A stretch of DNA of 64,000 nucleotides from Carpediemonas membranifera BICM (taxonomy: Eukaryota > Protista > Fornicata), in assembly GCA_019828565.1 (NCBI GenBank), contig JAHDYR010000062.1:1374421-1438420 (forward strand), given 5' to 3'. The translations under genes were made by a program, and so were the position numbers. Below, one piece after another: positions 1,272-54,921 of this stretch (its first letter is position 1; each line of letters starts with the position of its first letter). Under the pieces are notes generated by a model that did no database searches, was not told the origin of the DNA, and worked only from the letters and a program-made list of their open reading frames with translations.

Positions 1272-3701
1272 TCAATCTCTAGTCTGCTCATGGATGTAGA
1301 TGGGGACCCTGCTCGTGTCCATGACTTGGTGTCTGTTCGCGAGGGCGTCTATCCGTCGTGCTAGCGACTCGAGAGTCAGAGTTTTGGCATGCCCGTTGCC
1401 GAGGTCGATCTGGAGCTGCGAGGTGAGAGGTTCGGTCGGCGAAAGGTCCTGGGCACCGGATTCGACACGGAGACTGGCTGTGAGGGGATCAACGTCGTCG
1501 CCAACGATGCCTGATATGTCAATCTGGATGCGATAACGCGCCCCTCCGACAAGTCGACCGGCCCTGATCTGGGACTCAAGGCCGGTCACTCCAGTCACAC
1601 GACGCTCAGTAGAGATGCCGAAGGACGATGTCCCCAAGTTTCCCGAAGAGAACATCGACACTGAACGATCGCCCAAAGTTGACGACTGCCTCGGCCTGTG
1701 TGAACATACCGCCACGGGTGATGGAGTCCGGCCGACCCTGAAGCTGAAGCTGCTGCCGCTGATGTAGCCGTCATTAATGGCTGGAGAGTGCGGGTTGGGA
1801 GTCTGAGGAATTCCGGAAATGTATGAATCAGCAACCGACTGTGGTTCTTTGTGGCGACGGAATCGTCCCCTAAGCCTCGCCCCGGTCCTGAAAAATCCAG
1901 TTGCGGAACCCTTCACCGATCGCCCAAGCAGGGTCGACCCGCCATGGGCTGAGAACTTCGCACCACTGCTGAACCCGCTGATTGAGGACGAGATAGAAGA
2001 TGACACGATCGACGAGCTGGTCGAGGCTGCCGTCTTGAACAGCTTGGGGACGATGAACCTGGCCGCGCAGAGACAGACGAGGACTAGTACGACTGCAACG
2101 GCTAGGAAGCCGGCCCCTCCGATGATGCACGAGAACACTGACGAGCAGACCGAGCCGGTCAGGTCTGTGAGGTAGGGCAAGTTAAGGGCCCAATCGGGTA
2201 GGACACTACCACCGCCGCTGAACGTCGTCTTCTCCAGGTCTGTTGCTTCCAGGACAACGGAGGCGCTGTCGAGCTCCTCTGCGGTTGAGGCCGCCTGTAA
2301 GAGCACGGAGCAAGTGATTGAGACGGATTGGTCAATGTCGATGAGCGCCACCTCAAATTGGAAGGACTTGGACTCTCCTGCAGCAATGGTTGCAGTCTGG
2401 GAATCGGGCATGGCGAGGCCGTCAAGGTCACATTCCGACACTGACAACACATAGGTCGAGTCCAACGAGCCTTCATTCGTGACAGAGCAGGCGATTGTGC
2501 CCACCCCCGTGCCCTCGGTGAACGACGAGCCCTCCGCCTCAGTGATGCTGGCGTAGCTGACGGTCGTGCTCTCGAACAGACCGTGGCCTTCAATGTCGAC
2601 TGTGATCTTCACAGACATGTCCGCGGCAACGGACAGACCGCTTGGAATGATGCTGCAGTCTTCGTTGATGCAGCGCATAAACTCGGGCAGATCGCCCTGC
2701 TGGATGGCGGTGGTGTCTTTGTTAATCAAATCCGCGATTTGATTGTTCAATCCAGTGCCAACCTTGCTCGAGCAGAAGCCGGCCTGTTCCCTGTACGCCT
2801 CGAGGAAATCGGGCACGCTACCAATACAGTTGACCTCGCCTGCCTTGCACATGTAGTCGGATGGTACGATGAGAATATCGCTCGAGTAGTACGCCCCTTC
2901 ATGCGGGACCAGCAGATAGCGGCCAGTGTAGTCGATGGCGTCATCGCCCCCGACTGACTGCAGAGTCATGGTGACGTTGGACTCTGACGCAGTTTTTGAG
3001 GCGATGGACACGCTTGCGGTGACGGACTCGTCTCCGATGAGAAGCAGACAGTCGACCCCGGCGACCTGGTTGCGGCTGTAGATGAGGGAGCCATCATAGT
3101 ACTTGCCAGACAGCACGGGGCAGTGGGCCACGCTTGTCACCACATTCGTATTCACCGTCAGCCCGAAGCCAGTGTACCTGCAGTCGTTGGATGCAACGCT
3201 CGACAACAAGCAGGATATGTCGCAGCACCGGCCTCTACCCGCAGCAACGACCACCTGAGTCTCTGACCCGTCCTCCATGATACTCGCCCTGACCTCAGGG
3301 CAGGAGTAGTCGCTCAAAGAGTCGCTGCATTGAGTACTGAAGAGAGAGTAAGTGTACATCGTCTCGGAAATCTGGGCATCATACAGCTTGCCAGTATCCT
3401 TGAGAGTGTACAAATGCGAGGAGCTGGACAGGCTGCACTTGACGGAGATGTATTCGGAAGTATCGTAAGAATTGCCGTCAGTGTCGGAGGCACCGGTCAC
3501 TGTGATGGTGTTTGTGTCCGATGAATCGACGTTGAAGTACAAACGGACCTTATCAATACATTCTTCGGAGCCATCGCGGCCGTCCCTCGTCGAATAAGAC
3601 GTGCACTGGTTCAGAACAGTAGCACTGAGAAGCGTGCTGCAGACGCATGTTCCGATGAGTAATACGATCAATATGAAGTGTTTTGGCTGCAATAGCGGCA
3701 T
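1272..3701 (-). CDS. HAP2: HAP2/GCS1 class II gamete fusogen
   Basis: Signal peptide, then a Cys-rich ectodomain with HAP2-like blocks (LNQC...ECIDKVRL, GRCCDISC, SVAHCPVLSGKYY, NCIGSVPDF, CSSKVGTGLNNQIADL). An Ig-like domain III, a single TM with juxtamembrane Cys and a basic cytoplasmic tail follow. Confidence 0.8.
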   Translation of the reverse strand: MPLLQPKHFILIVLLIGTCVCSTLLSATVLNQCTSYSTRDGRDGSEECIDKVRLYFNVDSSDTNTITVTGASDTDGNSYDTSEYISVKCSLSSSSHLYTLKDTGKLYDAQISETMYTYSLFSTQCSDSLSDYSCPEVRASIMEDGSETQVVVAAGRGRCCDISCLLSSVASNDCRYTGFGLTVNTNVVTSVAHCPVLSGKYYDGSLIYSRNQVAGVDCLLLIGDESVTASVSIASKTASESNVTMTLQSVGGDDAIDYTGRYLLVPHEGAYYSSDILIVPSDYMCKAGEVNCIGSVPDFLEAYREQAGFCSSKVGTGLNNQIADLINKDTTAIQQGDLPEFMRCINEDCSIIPSGLSVAADMSVKITVDIEGHGLFESTTVSYASITEAEGSSFTEGTGVGTIACSVTNEGSLDSTYVLSVSECDLDGLAMPDSQTATIAAGESKSFQFEVALIDIDQSVSITCSVLLQAASTAEELDSASVVLEATDLEKTTFSGGGSVLPDWALNLPYLTDLTGSVCSSVFSCIIGGAGFLAVAVVLVLVCLCAARFIVPKLFKTAASTSSSIVSSSISSSISGFSSGAKFSAHGGSTLLGRSVKGSATGFFRTGARLRGRFRRHKEPQSVADSYISGIPQTPNPHSPAINDGYISGSSFSFRVGRTPSPVAVCSHRPRQSSTLGDRSVSMFSSGNLGTSSFGISTERRVTGVTGLESQIRAGRLVGGARYRIQIDISGIVGDDVDPLTASLRVESGAQDLSPTEPLTSQLQIDLGNGHAKTLTLESLARRIDALANRHQVMDTSRVPIYIHEQTRD

Positions 3702-11454: not shown

Positions 11455-12069
11455 ATGAAGAAGAATTGGCAGCTTGAAGCTGATTTAGGCCACGTCAAAA
11501 TCTGGGAGACACCCAATGTGAAGCTTGAACAGTACCCTACAAGCCCCCACGTCGCTGCCATGCTCGTTCAGCTGGCCAGCGGCACGTATGGCGATATAGA
11601 GGGCAAGAACATCACTGATTTAGGATGCGGTGGTGGTATTCTTGGCATAGCAGCGCTTCTCATGGGCGCGGAGCACGTTACCTTCGTCGACATCGACGAT
11701 GCTGTGCTAGAGATCGCGAAGGAAAACGTCGCCCTCTTCGAGCTCACAGACCAAGCAACGTTCATCAACCAGGATGTAAGCGAGCTGTCCGTCCCCGAGA
11801 CTGACGTTGTGATCATGAATCCCCCCTTTGGTACCAAACGGAAGGGCATCGACGTCGTCTTCCTCGAGCAGGCATGTAAGATCGGACCGGTGGTCTACAG
11901 CCTCCATAAGATGTCCACAGACGAGTTCCTCGTCCGCAAGGTCGTGTCCTGGGGCTGCAAGGCGACTGTGGCGGCCCACGTGTCGTTTGATATCCCGGCG
12001 ATGTATAAGTTCCACAAGAAGGGCAAAGTCGCCGTAGAGGTCAGCCTCATTCGCATTGAACGCGGGTGA
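11455..12069 (+). CDS. METTL5: 18S rRNA m6A methyltransferase METTL5-like
   Basis: KLEQYPTSPHVAA, SAM-binding DLGCGGG, NPPFGTK and VYSLHK motifs. Confidence 0.92.
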   Translation: MKKNWQLEADLGHVKIWETPNVKLEQYPTSPHVAAMLVQLASGTYGDIEGKNITDLGCGGGILGIAALLMGAEHVTFVDIDDAVLEIAKENVALFELTDQATFINQDVSELSVPETDVVIMNPPFGTKRKGIDVVFLEQACKIGPVVYSLHKMSTDEFLVRKVVSWGCKATVAAHVSFDIPAMYKFHKKGKVAVEVSLIRIERG

Positions 12070-12439
12070 GGGGCTGCCGGATGCATCCTTAGAGACAAGG
12101 CGTGGTGAAGTGTTATTAAACGGCTCTTTACGCGTGGAGCAGCATCTGTATTGTCACCACTGGTGCCATGATTGACACAGCCGAGATCTAAAGATGATCA
12201 GGCGAATGTCTTGACGTGCCAGTAGCGATACCAGAGAAGGCGGTGTAGTAGAGACGGTAGTTTATTTGCAAAAACGTCCTTTTATGGAGTATCATAGAGT
12301 GCACAGTGCAAGCAGTAAAGTAACTCTCAATCGTCTATAGCAGACTTCGTTTTATTTAGGAGCAGTTTATGTCACTGCGCGTGTGGTATTTAGAGGGTTT
12401 ATGTGGAGGATTCATGTAAAGGTGACTTAAGCTGTCGAC

Positions 12440-14710
12440 CCCCCTGGGATGAACTCCAGAGGACTGAACAGGTTCAGTCTGACGGCCCACCTGTCGTACA
12501 CCAGAAGGGTAGCGGACATGAGGGCGTCGGCGATGGTAAGAGCGACGGTTCTGGGTCGTGGAAAGCGGTTGTAGCTAGTAGTAATGACGCTTTGTGTTGT
12601 ATGATGCTGGTTTCTTGTGTTTTGAGGGATGCTGCCAGCTGATGAACCCTGAAAAGAAATGATCGATGCAGGCAGCTCAATATACTCCGATGCCTTCCAA
12701 GATATACACGGTGAAGGCTTCCGTTAACAAGGCCATTGGCGAGATTAACGGTGGAGGCGATAAGAACGCGCCGCGGCGAGGAAATCTTGAACCCGACATG
12801 CGTTCTTTCACGCAGGCTAAGTACACATTCACTTGCCTGCTTGCGTGCGTCTCTGCATCTGCGCACGCGTTGACCCCACCGAGGACGGTCAACCTGTTCG
12901 ACCAGGAGGTCCTCAAGCAGATCGTCAGCATTGCTCAGCAAAAGGTGTCGAAGGCAAAGGCAGCGGATCGGTGCAGGTGGATTGGCGACCTGGCGATGTG
13001 GAGGGACCCTGACATAACCCCACTCGTCCAGGACTTCGTCACGGCTTATAGCTACCTTGGCTTGTGCAAGCCATTTGACACCTGTTGGGCGAGTACTCCA
13101 CAGCCACCCGGGTCAGGCTCTCGCGCGCGTCACCCGGGTACCTGACCCGTCTTCGTGCTGGATTAGAACGGGTGCGTCCGCTCCTCCATGATGAGGGTGT
13201 TCGACAGGATTTTCTCGACACCCTAGGCGAGCTCGACACTGAGGTTGCCGCAATATCCGCCGATCATGACATGCATCATCGACAAATGCATGCATTGCCC
13301 GAGGAGCAGCGGGTGGGTCGCACTGGTACCGTGGCCGAGGCCCTCGTCGGCGTGCTGTCGTGCGTCACGCGCATGAGTGCTGCAGTAACCAAGCTGGTCA
13401 CACTCGCTCGTGCCGTGAACCTCGAGTTCAGCCAGGCTCTGCCAGAGCCGAAGCTCATTCCGTTCGTGCCGATGGCACCGGCCAAGCCTGGGTTCATGAC
13501 CATCGAGCGCGGAGTAACAGCGCTCACCCCAGCGATGAAGAGGCGCCTGCGTGTGCACGTGAATTGGTCAGCAACCAAGAATTTGACCGACGAGCAGGTG
13601 GCTGAATACGAGCGTGATCACGGCGACATCACCAAGCTCCGCAGAGTGCTCTCTGTGAAGACTGACGGGGTCTCTGTTGCTGTGACGGTTTGGGTGGGTC
13701 GCGAGAAATACAGTGGCGGTCGGGTGGCTGACCGGCCCACGTACAAAAAGGGTAGCAACAAGCGGGCTCGGCTCGGTCAGGATGACGCCGAGGCTACTCC
13801 TGCCCCGGACATTCAAGCTCTCATGGGCTTCGACCCTGGTGCTCGGTCGCTGGGCGGCTACACGATCCGCCGCCCAGACGGGCAGAGTGTATCTGGCGTA
13901 CTCGCTAAGTGTGGCTACACTGCCACCCCCTCTTTCCGCGTGAATATGAGCGCAGCATCGTTCAAAACGACAAGTCTAGAGGCTCTCAAACAGTCGATTA
14001 GGTTTGTCCATGAGAACATCGTTCAGATCATCAACGAGGGGACGAGAAAGTGTTTCCGCCGTGCGACTTTTGCCAATCACTGTCTGCGCCTGAAGCACTT
14101 CGCCCGGGCTGGACGTCAACTCCTGGATGATCTCGGCGGGCGCCCCCCGGAGCCCATTCATCTCGAAGTCGCGTATGGGGCTGCACTGTTCGGTTCCGCC
14201 GGCACTCCCTCCTGTGCTCCGTACCGCCACTTTGCTCGAGCTCTTCCTGGCATCATGCTCCGGCACAACGTCGTCGTGAGTGTCAACATGGTCTCCGAAT
14301 TCCGCACTTCCATCGTGTGCCCACACTGCAAAGCACACTTCAGACGTGTGGTGTACATACACCGCACCATGCTCTGCCAGAATCCCGCGTGCGAGGGAGC
14401 TCCATGGCGCGTTGAACGGCTTCGTCGGCATCCCGAGCAGAGAGACACACTTCTCAATCTCTCTCACCGAGATAAGAGCGCCAGCGAGAACATCCTTTGG
14501 TGCACCTACGATGCAACTTCAGATCAGATAGAGCAATCTCCTTTCCACTACGACTCCCAGAGAGGTGCTCTTCCTCGCTATCATTAACTTGCTAAGTTGA
14601 GCAAACACGCGCTGCAGCGCGCGTGATATGCAGCGCACGATTGATAGAGTATGATGAACCACACTGCGATCCTGATGCTGCTTGGATCACTGTGTTTTGG
14701 ACTCAACAAT
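12440..14710 (+). mobile_element. Probable Fanzor-carrying non-autonomous transposon; termini not resolved
   Basis: The Fanzor ORF sits between housekeeping genes with an unusually long (~600 bp) upstream non-coding tract. No transposase is adjacent, and a second partial copy lies at 54675-54849. Confidence 0.45.
12666..14587 (+). CDS. Fanzor1-type RNA-guided endonuclease (eukaryotic TnpB/Cas12 relative), split over two overlapping frames (12666-13145 and 13085-14587)
   Basis: N-terminal YTVKASVNKAI; PFVPMAPAKPGFMTIE; SVKTDGVSVAV; RuvC-I MGFDPG (D codon 13832); VAYGAALFG; RuvC-II VSEFRTSIVCPHC (E codon 14297); zinc-finger LCQNPAC; RuvC-III HRDKSASENI (D codon 14471). About 630 aa if joined. 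Confidence 0.88.
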
Positions 14711-14730
14711 TCTAATCCTGCGCAGCACAG
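14588..14730 (+). ncRNA. Candidate Fanzor omegaRNA (scaffold plus 3' guide)
   Basis: Directly after the Fanzor stop. GTTGAG-C-AAACAC (14596-14608) can pair with GTGTTT-TGGA-CTCAAC (14692-14707). Internal hairpin options are CACGCGC/GCGCGTG and GATCC/GGATC. Confidence 0.5.
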
Positions 14731-14746
14731 CGCGACAGCGCCCCAA

Positions 14747-16630
14747 ATGGATCGAGGTGGCGATGATTGGAACTTTTATCACGTCAACGATCATCACAAT
14801 GGCATCAAAGACAGCCTTGAGACTTGGCCTGTAGATTCGACCGGCCAGGAAGACGATCTCGATGAACACGCTAGCTCTGGGCATTCTTCGCTCTCTACGT
14901 CCAAAGATTCGAATGAAACGGGTCAGTATGAGAGCACAATTGACCTCGGCTCCGCTCTTGATCGGTTGATCAATCGTGTGAACGGTGGAGGAAGATCATC
15001 AGCCAATTCCTCTCGCCACCGTGGCTCCCGCCCTTATAACGGGAGAAGACCCACGGCTACACCACCACTTGACTCCATCATGGCTGTTTCAGAGATTGAC
15101 AAAATCGTTGGCCGATACAACATCGGTCTGGCACACACAATGACCTGGCGCAATGGCCTCGCCCGCCGCCTTGAGACGGGCGGTTCTCGGTCCCAGAGCA
15201 GAGAGGTACAGCGTATGACGTGCAACATGCTCAACGAGCTGGCTCAAAAAGCTGCCGGAAAGCAGGCTGTCGTGTCATCCTCTGGCATCTTCTACCCGTT
15301 CATCCATGGTAATGCCAGGATCAGGGGCAAAATTTCCGACGGTGTCGCGTGGGTGGCCAAGTATCTGGCACATCAGGGGGTGCCGGATGAAGATTTGCCG
15401 GAATGCGTCTCAGTACGGACGTATGGACACAACTACGACCGGGCTGCCGGATCCAGAGGCAGCCAGAGGATAGCCCAGGCGTCACAATCCATGTCTGACA
15501 CACTTTTCCCAGTGACAACCCCATGCCGGAAACTCCAGTCAGACCCGTTTATCCGGGACCAGACTCTGATCGCCCAGTTTGGTATTAACATCGCCTCCAG
15601 GGCTGCCAGCAACTCTGGGGTCCGCATAGAGTTTGACATGACTCCGGTCGCGATCCAGCAGTTTAAGGCAGCGGTTGAGCTCCCCTGTGAGATCAAGCCG
15701 CCGGCCCAAGACGAGCACGCGTCGCAGTCAGACAGCGAGTTTGACGAGCCCGCGCCCGCATCTATCCCCGATGCTCGCAAGGTGATTCTGCTCCGCTTCG
15801 ACTCCCCCGGCGGAGTCTACCCGTGGCTCCGGAACGACGGGGTTTACGTGACGGTGGATGGACAGTCCAGGATGGTCGGCCCCAAAGAGATGGAAGCTGC
15901 GAGTGCGTCAACGAAGGCGGTATATGGCATGCCGCTGTCGAGGGTCATTCCCCGATCAGTGGATCTTACAGCCACCGTGAGCAGAGCTCTAGGCGCTACA
16001 CGGGACCAGAAGCATATTATCATTGAGTATAAGCCCGCGCCTGGGAGAGACCTGCCCAACCCTGGTGCTTTCGCCAACGGCATTCTGTTTGTGGAGACGG
16101 GCACCCTGTACTCGCCCTGGGCCCTCGGCCAAGTCATCAGCAACTCGCCCGACAAGTCAATATCGTCGAATCCTGCTCTGAGCGATGAATCTGAATGTGA
16201 GGACGATTTCCATCAGGAACTTACCCGAATCTCACTCGACGACCCCCTCGCCTTCACCAGAATTAAGATTCCCGGCCGCTCTGTCAATTGTCGCCACACG
16301 CAGTGCTTCGACATCGCCGTGTTCCTGGAATTCGTTCGGGAGACAGCCAACTTCAACTGCCCGATTTGCACCCAGCCGACCGCCCCGGAAGACCTGAGGG
16401 TCGACAGCTTTGTCATATACCTACTCGGCATGCTGCCGGATAAGGACCAGGTGCTTGTTGACCGGGCTGGACGAGTTGTCAACGAACCGGTGCACGGTCG
16501 ACGGTCGAGGGCGAGGGCGGGTCACATGTCGAGGGAGCCACCTCTTCCGATCGCGAAGAAGCGAGAGCCTGACCCGTGGCCGTCTGGAGTGAATTCTGGG
16601 ACAGCTGAAGACCCTTGGGAGATTGAGTGA
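14747..16630 (+). CDS. SP-RING (MIZ zinc finger) SUMO E3 ligase, Siz/PIAS-like
   Basis: ISLDDPLAFTRIKIPGRSVNCRHTQCFD...FNCPIC is an SP-RING domain. The ORF is open from 14651, but ATG 14747 is preferred because the upstream part overlaps the structured RNA candidate. Confidence 0.8.
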   Translation: MDRGGDDWNFYHVNDHHNGIKDSLETWPVDSTGQEDDLDEHASSGHSSLSTSKDSNETGQYESTIDLGSALDRLINRVNGGGRSSANSSRHRGSRPYNGRRPTATPPLDSIMAVSEIDKIVGRYNIGLAHTMTWRNGLARRLETGGSRSQSREVQRMTCNMLNELAQKAAGKQAVVSSSGIFYPFIHGNARIRGKISDGVAWVAKYLAHQGVPDEDLPECVSVRTYGHNYDRAAGSRGSQRIAQASQSMSDTLFPVTTPCRKLQSDPFIRDQTLIAQFGINIASRAASNSGVRIEFDMTPVAIQQFKAAVELPCEIKPPAQDEHASQSDSEFDEPAPASIPDARKVILLRFDSPGGVYPWLRNDGVYVTVDGQSRMVGPKEMEAASASTKAVYGMPLSRVIPRSVDLTATVSRALGATRDQKHIIIEYKPAPGRDLPNPGAFANGILFVETGTLYSPWALGQVISNSPDKSISSNPALSDESECEDDFHQELTRISLDDPLAFTRIKIPGRSVNCRHTQCFDIAVFLEFVRETANFNCPICTQPTAPEDLRVDSFVIYLLGMLPDKDQVLVDRAGRVVNEPVHGRRSRARAGHMSREPPLPIAKKREPDPWPSGVNSGTAEDPWEIE

Positions 16631-52278: not shown

Positions 52279-54528
52279 ATGCGCGTCGGAACTCATTCTC
52301 ACTTTCTGACACATCTTCTTCTGTTCCTCGCCTTCAATATCAGTGCAACGGCGCTCGCATCTAGCATTGCTGTTCAACAGACACAAACGCTGGAAAATCC
52401 GAACCTATACACTGGCGGGACGGTCGATGTGGGCTTGCACATGGTGAGCTCCAGTTTCGCTGTCGTTGGGCAGTACGCAAGCCTCAGCAGCGCCGGCCAA
52501 TCGTATCTGTTCTCTCTTACCAACGGAGAATGGACCTACGTCCAGGAATTCGCCCGCCCGTCAGACGTGGGGTCGTACGATTACTTCGGCCGCATGATCA
52601 CGAGCAACGGGAGTACCGTCGCCATCAGCGCCCACCAGGACGACGACGGAGGTAGCGAGACAGGCTCTGTCTACATCTACGAGCCTGACGAAGCTGGCGT
52701 CTACGGTACTCCGACGAAACTTTACTCATCCCCCCAGGAAGAGGGCTTCGGCCTCTCAGACCGGCCAGAGCTCATGCACCGCAGCGTCAGTCGGCTACTA
52801 CGTCGACTCGACCGAGGCGACCGCCCATGTCGAGTGCGAGACTGGCAAGTTCCAGAACGAGACGGGTCAGACGAGCTGCTTCACCGCCGAGACCGGGTAC
52901 ATCGCCGCCGGCCCCCACGACAGCCAGCAGACCCCGTGCGACAGCGGCACCCACGCCCACCGCGGACCTGAGCACATGCGAGCCGTGTCCGCGGCTCCAG
53001 CACAGCCTCGGACGGCAAGCCTCACAGCACATGCACTGAGTTCATCCAGTCGAGCACGGTGGTTGATACGGAGTGGTACATCACGGTCGACACGTCCGAC
53101 ATGACGGGCGACGTCGCCACTGCTGAGCTGGGGTCGACCTTGTACCGTGTATGGTTTAATGAAAGCAACGAACTTCCGCAGTTTAGGGTCACAACCTCTT
53201 GTGCTGTGGTCAAGAACGGGTCGGCCACTGTCATCGTGCCGTTCGTAGACACGACCACAGACTATTCGGGGACGCACACCCTCTCGTACAGCCTCACGAC
53301 GGGGCCCACAGGCTCGTCTACTGTCGTTATCCCCAGCTCATTCGCCATACCAGACACCAAGGTGACTATTACCGGCACACAGGCGACTGGCGTCGTCTCA
53401 AGCCCAGTGTGCCCCACGGCCACCATGGTGCTCGGCTCATTACAAACCTGCTCGACCGCAACAATAGTCGATGGAGCTGTCAAGTGTATCTCGGATCCAG
53501 AGATAATCAACGCCGCCACTATCGCCAGCACCCTGTCGCCGTCAGTTGGCGGGACCATTGCGTCTGGCGAGACTGCATTCATCGCCCTGACCGGCGCGCA
53601 GTTTACCAGCACTGCTCAGCTCTCGGTAGGGTATGATGGCGTCCTCCTCGGCGTAGACGTGGGCGACCGCATTACCTTCACTGTCCCGGCCTCTTCTGAC
53701 TCGACAAAGCAGGAAGCTCATGTGATTACGGCCGAGCTCGACGGCGCCGCCTTCCTGACCGAGACTGTCACCGTTACTGTCCCAGTTGCCCCGACCCCGG
53801 CCGGTTTCGACTGGGTCACGGTGACAATCGTGGGTGTGTTGGTCGCCGCCTTCGCGACTGTCATCATTCTCGTCGTGGTGCTGCTCGTCATGCTGCTGCT
53901 TGTCGCCATCGTCAGCTCGGGCGCGCTTGCCATCGCCCAGAAGGTGATGGCGAAGAAGGCCAACCCGGTCGTCAAGCTCAACGCCCTCCAGCTCGCATCC
54001 ATGGACGGAAACGCCGAGACCCTCCTCAAGCTCTGCACTGACACCCCCACCTCGTTGCTCGAGTCCCAGATCAACGCACGGGACGCTGACGGTCGCACTG
54101 CTGTCTTCTTCGCGACTCAGGGTGGGTTCGCCGGGTGTGTCACAATCCTGGCAGACAACGGTGCGGATGTTGACATTGCGACAAACTCACACTGGAAGAA
54201 GGGCCGCAAGAGGGCAGTGAAGGGCATGGGGATGTTCAACGGCGATGCCCCCATTCATGTGGCGGCATCATCAGGTGACATCGACTGCCTCCGCGCCTTC
54301 CTCGCTGCCAAGGCTGACACGACGCTCGCGAACGACGACGGCTGCACTGCCCTGACCCTCGCCTTGGCCGGACTTCACGACGAATGCGTCGAAGTCATCA
54401 GGGAGGCCATGCCGGCCAAGAAGCTGTCTGACGCTACTGAAGTCCAGAGCGGTAGCGACACCGACGAGCTCGGGGACATCGGGCTGGGGGTTCCAGAGCG
54501 TCTGGACCAGTGTGAGGGGGATATGTAA
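52279..54528 (+). pseudogene. Frameshifted surface receptor gene: FG-GAP-like + Cys-rich repeats + TM + ankyrin repeats
   Basis: FG-GAP-like DYFGRMI...AISAHQDDD..GSVYIY; Cys-rich repeats read across three frame changes at about 52757, 52950 and 52992; ankyrin motifs DGRTAVFFA and GDAPIHVAA. Could be a consensus error rather than a true pseudogene. Confidence 0.6.
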
Positions 54529-54674
54529 CATGGGATGGGATGTATATATGTAGCATTGGTAATGACGTAAATGGATAGCTGGGTGAGGTGACGTGCCTTC
54601 GGTGATTCACTGCGACCTCAATGGAGGAGGTCAGCCACAGCCGAGGCCGAACTGTGTTGCCAGTGCCGTAGACA

Positions 54675-54849
54675 GGAGCCCATTCATCTCGAAGTCGCGT
54701 ATGGGGCTGCACTGTTCGGTTCCGCCGGCACTCCCTCCTGTGCTCCGTACCAACACTTTGCTCGAGCTCTTCCTGGCATCATGCTCCGGCACAACGTCGT
54801 CGTGACTGTCACGATGGTCTCGGAATTGCGCACTTCCATCGTGTGCCCA
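54675..54849 (+). pseudogene. 175-bp remnant of a second Fanzor copy (RuvC-II region)
   Basis: Aligns without gaps to 14149-14323 with 7 mismatches. Confidence 0.92.
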
Positions 54850-54921
54850 TTCGACAGTATTCTTATCCTGCGCGGCACAGTGCCGAACCAAACAACAGCA
54901 ACGAGACATTAAGCGCAGCGC

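Follow-up and report, generated by a model that had tools for sequence, protein, structure and literature searches.

The window, a 64,000-nucleotide stretch of the genome of Carpediemonas membranifera, contains a broken copy, 2348 bp long (12382..14729, + strand), of a high-copy mobile element that runs from TGTGG to GCACA, has no transposase gene, and carries a Fanzor gene. Its ends recur in eight other copies in unrelated flanks, and the 5-bp target-site duplication (TSD) GCGCG stands on either side (12377..12381, repeated at 14730..14734). Upstream of the element lies an ordinary host gene for a METTL5-like methyltransferase (11455-12069, + strand; Pfam MTS/PrmA), and downstream of it a host gene resembling SP-RING/MIZ SUMO ligases (14747..16630, + strand; PF02891, E 8.7e-16). 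A second derivative of the same family, internally deleted to 212 bp and flanked by the TSD GTGCC, occurs at 54668..54879 (+ strand).

The nuclease gene is present in two pieces. The 5' piece (12666..13145, + strand; 159 aa) encodes the WED/REC start with the motif YTVKASVN in a frame of its own and is out of frame past 13083, and the 3' piece (13085..14587, + strand) encodes the TDG motif, the RuvC-I aspartate (13832), the rearranged RuvC-II glutamate (14297), a C4 zinc finger (about 14318-14392), and the RuvC-III aspartate (14471). The motif order given by an earlier sequence-only reading of this DNA was recovered in full, including the codons GAC, GAA, and GAT of the triad, all in frame with the ORF 13085-14587, and the four zinc-finger cysteines. 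Its description of an intact RuvC triad holds for the codons but not for the gene, which is split by a frameshift in this copy. Alignment with an intact copy revealed a one-base loss in a GG run (13083..13084, + strand) as the sole frame break, along with two in-frame 3-nt deletions, and other copies, in contigs from public runs, have one extra G after 13083. Because the assembly was made from Nanopore R9.4 together with Illumina reads (PMC8516963), the missing base may be a true mutation or a Nanopore assembly error. On paper, splicing at one of several GT..AG pairs could put the gene back in frame; an intron at this position was rejected because the additional G is retained in other copies and because intact copies code through this region and conserve it. 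The window copy also has a deletion junction at 12555..12558, where the inner 34-nt left block, the antisense polypurine tract (PPT), and about 260 nt following the block, all present in other copies, are gone. With its PPT lost and its frame shifted, the window copy is dead and can neither move nor make nuclease; the candidate omegaRNA region is whole.

More than 100 annotated gene models (cluster sizes sum to about 105, some being pieces) make up three families, namely A, to which the window copy belongs, and B and C, which are 42-46% identical to A at the protein level. Every named homolog belongs to C. membranifera, in agreement with the metamonad-like host that had been predicted. A natural intact family-A copy, P0035 (L002:10001-11929; 642 aa), served as the search protein in place of the joined window gene, and the window pieces were searched by reference. 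HMMER against 1.84 billion representatives gave 28 hits and no distant relative; sequence searches returned Carpediemonas proteins only, viral and metagenome scans for outside relatives and sequence searches of the PDB were blank, and Pfam gave a sub-threshold PF07282 only. One Fanzor fragment, P0001 (L001:10001-11599), is named 'cytosine deaminase' at NCBI, which is probably a mislabel; a true deaminase gene lies close by in that locus.

Identity as a Fanzor, together with the Fanzor1-like size proposed from the letters, was borne out by the intact 642-aa copy. The published Fanzor/TnpB signature, D-x(125,275)-[TS]-[TS]-x-x-C4 finger-x(5,50)-RD (PMC3627910), is found in P0035 as D392, T550/S551, C554-C578, and R604-D605. 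The rearranged RuvC-II glutamate specific to Fanzors, located six residues ahead of the zinc finger (PMC13565253), occupies that place in all three families (EFRTSIVC in A, EFRTSLVC in B, EDRTTVVC in C). The Atlas model of P0035 aligned with giant-virus Fanzor-like clusters at TM 0.59-0.64 over about 500 residues, with a feature score of 0.98, and with IS605 TnpB at TM 0.39-0.40, both sides being predicted in each comparison; the modelled overall fold is TnpB/Cas12f-like. Two AlphaFold models had pLDDT values of 37 and 32, a confidence too low to read convergence of the triad, and the outcome of Foldseek on one of them was meaningless. Size, the lack of an adjacent serine recombinase, and the nearest Atlas clusters, which are 600-700 aa long and carry PF07282/PF26935, favour Fanzor1 over Fanzor2. 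This CRISPR-Cas12-related nuclease is probably RNA-guided, and its presence here extends the range of Fanzors to metamonads.

The full 642-aa frame was present in only one of nine sampled A copies. Amino-acid changes were depleted among these nine, the rough omega being 0.42 (p about 0.006) where variants were shared and 0.61 (p about 0.011) where they were private, a pattern that, at the level of the aligned copies, demonstrates purifying selection on the nuclease. Residues D392, E547, and D605 were invariant in 9/9 A copies, and both this triad and the CxxC..CxxxxC finger are kept in A, B, and C; across three families at 42-46% identity, such conservation is, as judged from the alignments, more than chance. 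The suggestion that the gene might be a domesticated nuclease is contradicted by the more than 100 gene models, the precise ends, and the target duplications at unrelated sites. The GT..AG pairs described above could be cited in favour of one domesticated host nuclease whose gene has an intron where the frame breaks, but the same gene models and TSDs, and the coding, conserved state of the candidate intron region in intact copies, leave that explanation a negligible probability.

The layout of the element was revealed by comparison of copies. In family A, a 30-34-nt block at the right end recurs in direct orientation close to the left end, and families B and C have the same direct-block layout with sequences of their own. 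In the window, the right end block (14691..14729, + strand) resembles a miniature LTR with TG..CA termini, its last 30-34 nt being a repeat of the left block of other copies, and the left end is formed by a segment of variable length, here called U (12382..12555, + strand), which may have been donated by a helper element. The TG..CA ends are accompanied by a 5-bp TSD, which is perfect at seven of the eight tabulated A sites. In all three families, the strand antisense to the Fanzor gene carries a PPT that abuts the left block on its inner side, the position immediately preceding the 3' LTR when the minus strand is read (deleted in the window copy); these tracts contain 14-16 purines in 18 and are placed like gypsy PPTs, with G-rich ends like theirs. 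A solo left block of family B lies at 12285..12349 (- strand) between copies of the TSD TTTTA (12280-12284 and 12350-12354), and with two further blocks in L009 and L010, also with TSDs, the three solo B blocks resemble solo LTRs at the sequence level. Terminal inverted repeats were absent beyond 4-6 bp, and the non-autonomy expected from the lack of a neighbouring transposase was upheld, none being found within the element or beside any copy in 12 loci.

These features bear on whether the element is an ordinary non-autonomous cut-and-paste DNA transposon, either Ginger-like or with an unknown DDE transposase, whose Fanzor restores the element after excision. TGT..ACA ends with 5-bp TSDs fit Ginger-type transposons too, the end blocks are partly independent in inheritance, and internally deleted derivatives with perfect TSDs look like the products of gap repair. 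Moreover, all documented Fanzor carriers are DNA transposons (PMC13565253). Against this origin, inverted repeats do not extend past 4-6 bp, no such transposase adjoins any copy in the 12 loci, and direct end blocks, PPTs in three families, and solo blocks would be unexpected, as would the near-identity to a gypsy LTR end and the family-matched insertion geometry described below; we consider such a transposon quite unlikely.

The insertion sites share a host sequence. At nearly every insertion site that was read, an 8-mer, GCAGTTTA or close to it, is found 6-8 bp from the left TSD and behaves as the target-site determinant; in the window this promoter-like motif is at 12362..12369 (+ strand), 7 bp ahead of the TSD, and has served two insertions, with the solo B block lying 7 bp away on the left and the A element 7 bp away on the right. 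Among host genes not adjoining an element, 24 of 82 have the motif, in either orientation, 12-50 nt ahead of the ATG; by comparison, it occurs in 4.1% of coding windows, shuffles gave 6.4 +/- 2.6, and the enrichment at promoters has p about 1e-12. For family B, a TGC triplet occupies the same position in 6/6 sites and in the element gypsy-2. Two further gypsy-like elements (L002:230-5845 and L004:600-1500) have LTRs with GCAGTTTA about 20 nt from the start. The A element in the window splits the motif from the likely ATG (14747) of the SP-RING gene; its right end block contains the motif reversed, at a similar distance, as in L001 and L003, and this reversed copy may keep the SP-RING gene expressed. 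These observations reveal a core-promoter motif in Carpediemonas and promoter-targeted gypsy integration. A separate 53-bp TGT..ACA mini-element with 4-bp TSDs, of a family distinct from A, B, and C, holds the promoter motif internally and was seen at 53141-53193 of the window, L001:13382-13434, and L002:843-892.

The retroelements at these loci link the three families to Ty3/gypsy. Gypsy-1 (L006:4786-9431) is a full Ty3/gypsy element with gag zinc knuckles, reverse transcriptase (RT), RNase H, integrase, and a chromodomain between 92-bp LTRs, and it is inserted 8 bp from the motif, 1 bp inside the left end of an A copy at the same motif. The left end of C matches the U5 end of gypsy-1 at 30 of 31 terminal nt, and both insert at motif+8 in forward orientation. 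Gypsy-2 (L009:9883-18737) is likewise a full gypsy element, and its U5 end equals the left end of B over nine terminal nt; both insert at motif+7 reversed (6/6 sites for B), in L009 at the same site. Gypsy-3 (L009:13647-18173; 53-nt LTRs), nested in gypsy-2, has in common with A the last 8 nt of U5 and the GTGATC that follows the 5' block, GTGATC coming after the right end block of A on the minus strand as it does after the gypsy-3 LTR; its single site fits the motif poorly. The A left end also matches the U3 end of gypsy-2 at 21/31 positions, closer than the gypsy-3 match, and the helper of family A is therefore ambiguous between the two on sequence grounds. An autonomous partner with common att ends and target preference is, by these sequence matches, clear for C (gypsy-1) and likely for B (gypsy-2). 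In gypsy-1 as in gypsy-2, one att end is of the TGTG type and the other of the TGA type, but the two elements carry them on opposite LTR sides; a 14-bp palindrome crosses the LTR end and primer position in gypsy-3, and a 10-bp palindrome is found there in gypsy-1 and gypsy-2.

Taken together, we regard the element as probably gypsy-mobilised and non-autonomous, carrying a Fanzor1-like nuclease and a candidate omegaRNA as antisense cargo between miniature LTR-type ends, and spread by the Ty3/gypsy chromoviruses of C. membranifera. The insertion step would very probably be carried out by the integrase of gypsy, anchored through a factor bound at the promoter motif. The earlier sequence-only reading had noted neither the element ends nor the promoter-linked insertion site, nor the connection to Ty3/gypsy LTR retrotransposons, in which the unusual aspect lies. 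A Myb-like tethering factor, by analogy with motif 3 of Trichomonas (PMC4693282), is only a lead.

Several features depart from the textbook LTR cycle. Two identical LTRs were absent from all copies compared; the outer, U5-side parts of the two end blocks differ in every copy, and only about 25-34 nt are common. A tRNA-type (TGG) primer site after the 5' block was found neither in the elements nor in the gypsy helpers. Block haplotypes were discordant in three of eight A copies, and the L011 copy has the right-block haplotype on both sides. The left ends of A contain from 0 to more than 174 nt of segment U, with about eight different cut points, joined at one fixed landing point in all A copies except the window copy; a second donor type, U', about 78% identical to U, is found on a 96%-identical body. 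The donor of U was not found in the 12 loci or among the five gypsy-like elements seen. We file the element as a Fanzor by its protein features and, in its mode of working, as similar to a non-autonomous LTR element, although it lacks two of the traits by which such elements are defined.

The swapped, variable-length left ends and the missing tRNA primer site would be explained if an antisense transcript were co-packaged with a helper and reverse-transcribed, with helper strong-stop DNA priming minus-strand synthesis after jumping onto the element RNA at the left block, a route that we judge somewhat probable. The discordant end blocks, the absence of a primer-binding site, and the many deletion derivatives with short junction insertions could also arise if the ends were derived from gypsy and inserted by gypsy integrase, with a DNA intermediate formed by recombination or repair (for example at Fanzor breaks) and the PPT a relic. 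However, PPTs have persisted across three families whose proteins are only about 45% identical, the fixed landing and variable jump-off points suit template switching by a polymerase, and one haplotype was copied into both blocks in L011; such a DNA intermediate appears improbable to us, and reverse transcription is retained as the preferred route.

The omegaRNA that had been suggested for the 3' end of the element gained support as a candidate, a structured 3' end being found. The putative scaffold (14606..14729, + strand) opens with a 7-bp stem-loop (14606-14625), followed by a long rod hairpin that reaches the element terminus; solved Fz1 RNAs likewise open with a 7-bp stem-loop, SL1 (PMC11423790). 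The last 125 nt of the window copy folded with z = -2.6 and -3.2, the 3' end of family C with z = -5.7 and -6.6, and 3' conservation breaks off at the element end. Covariation was not detected in the 3' RNA among the compared copies because these are too alike, and Rfam gave no match for the 3' end. From the biology of Fanzors (PMC13565253), the right TSD (14730..14734) with the next 10-15 nt would be the guide. At the eight A sites, no conserved bases were seen in the TSD or the preceding 5 nt, a sample in which a short TAM could be missed, and the only conserved feature nearby was the motif 7-8 bp away. The putative guides of 14 copies had no meaningful second-site match in the fetched DNA. 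Given the variable sequence beside the guide site, the TAM is predicted to be unusual or relaxed, and this would be of interest for genome editing.

If the guide is the flank to the right of each copy, its natural target would be the empty allele. The host is predicted to be haploid, to be without NHEJ, and to have Hap2 and Gex1 (PMC8516963), and a HAP2/GCS1 gamete fusogen gene lies in the window itself (1272-3701, - strand; Pfam PF10699, E 6.5e-20); the host is probably sexual. In such a host, cutting of the empty allele by the Fanzor in the zygote after mating would lead homologous repair to copy the element across. This homing, guided by the right flank, is the weakest step of the proposed mechanism, possible though short of probable in our estimation. 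Alternatively, the vehicle may be retro-type, the point on which this explanation overlaps ours, with a Fanzor that does not home: it might be passive cargo, have a non-cutting role such as RNA binding, packaging, or promoter regulation, or cut for another purpose, aiding insertion or competing with gypsy at promoters. The lack of an adjacent TAM at insertion sites, the fact that retroelements never excise and so have no need of restorative homing, and an intact frame in only 1/9 sampled A copies would suit a non-homing Fanzor, but the D/E/D residues and zinc finger conserved in A, B, and C, omega below 1, and the retained structured 3' RNA argue against it, and these variants, considered jointly, seem to us rather unlikely. 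The fullest form of the preferred explanation, a retroelement-borne OMEGA system built of asymmetric mini-LTR units, replicated through helper strong-stop DNA, inserted next to a core-promoter motif that is replaced by the element's own end, and homing into empty alleles with a relaxed or non-adjacent TAM, is put forward tentatively. If true, no earlier case would exist of an RNA-guided homing nuclease borne by an element that does not excise.

Short TG..CA direct ends, a PPT, a 5-bp TSD, solo ends, and helper dependence characterise the TRIM, LARD, and VL30 elements. The Carpediemonas element is like them in each of these respects, and unlike them it has asymmetric end blocks, no tRNA primer site, a left end taken over from donors, and, as cargo, a nuclease gene in antisense orientation whose RNA scaffold overlaps one end. 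With Fanzor1 (SpuFz1, GtFz1, PpFz1; PMC3627910, PMC10432273, PMC11423790), it shares a protein of about 640 aa, the D-x-T/S-C4 finger-RD arrangement with the glutamate six residues ahead of the finger, multi-copy non-autonomous elements, and a 3' end whose structure opens with a 7-bp stem-loop and finishes at the element terminus. It differs from Fanzor1 in having no sequence-level hit outside Carpediemonas, no terminal inverted repeats, a variable TSD, no AT-rich TAM at the site, and LTR-type ends. Tf1/sushi chromoviruses of S. pombe integrate at promoters beside sites bound by a host DNA-binding protein (PMC7175516) and are comparable as chromodomain gypsy elements with no tRNA primer and with integration near a promoter site. 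Tf1 primes itself through an 11-nt complement of its own 5' end (PMC7175516), whereas in Carpediemonas short palindromes follow the LTR and no complement of the 11-nt type was seen.

Gypsy elements near or nested with Fanzor loci have been described by Jiang et al. (bioRxiv 10.1101/2023.06.13.544871) and Saito et al. (PMC10432273). In those cases, gypsy lies within 10 kb or a Ty3 has inserted into a Fanzor locus, whereas in Carpediemonas it is the element carrying the Fanzor that itself matches gypsy, in its ends, its PPT, and its target geometry. According to a 2026 review, no retrotransposon is known, or expected, to encode Fanzor, and in current theory OMEGA nucleases pay off only for excising elements (PMC13565253). 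A gypsy-type carrier is the kind this review calls not known for Fanzors, and the interest lies in the family and not in the window copy; the existence of three Fanzor families that have gypsy-type ends and retain their catalytic residues would open the claim to a direct test, and allelic homing, if true, would be a second reason to keep an OMEGA nuclease. Among the papers searched, apart from the supplementary catalogues of the Fanzor papers, we found none on Fanzor with Carpediemonas or Metamonada.

Two minor observations were made at the other loci. An unannotated 822-aa reverse transcriptase ORF in L011 (5640-8108, - strand) gave generic RT hits only and by eye looks like a telomerase RT. 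Near-identical inverted duplications (99.6%) occur in L010 (8643-11668 and 17318-20349), where they take in a C element plus flank, and in L008 (4628-5263 and 15375-16010), representing either recent duplication or an assembly artefact.
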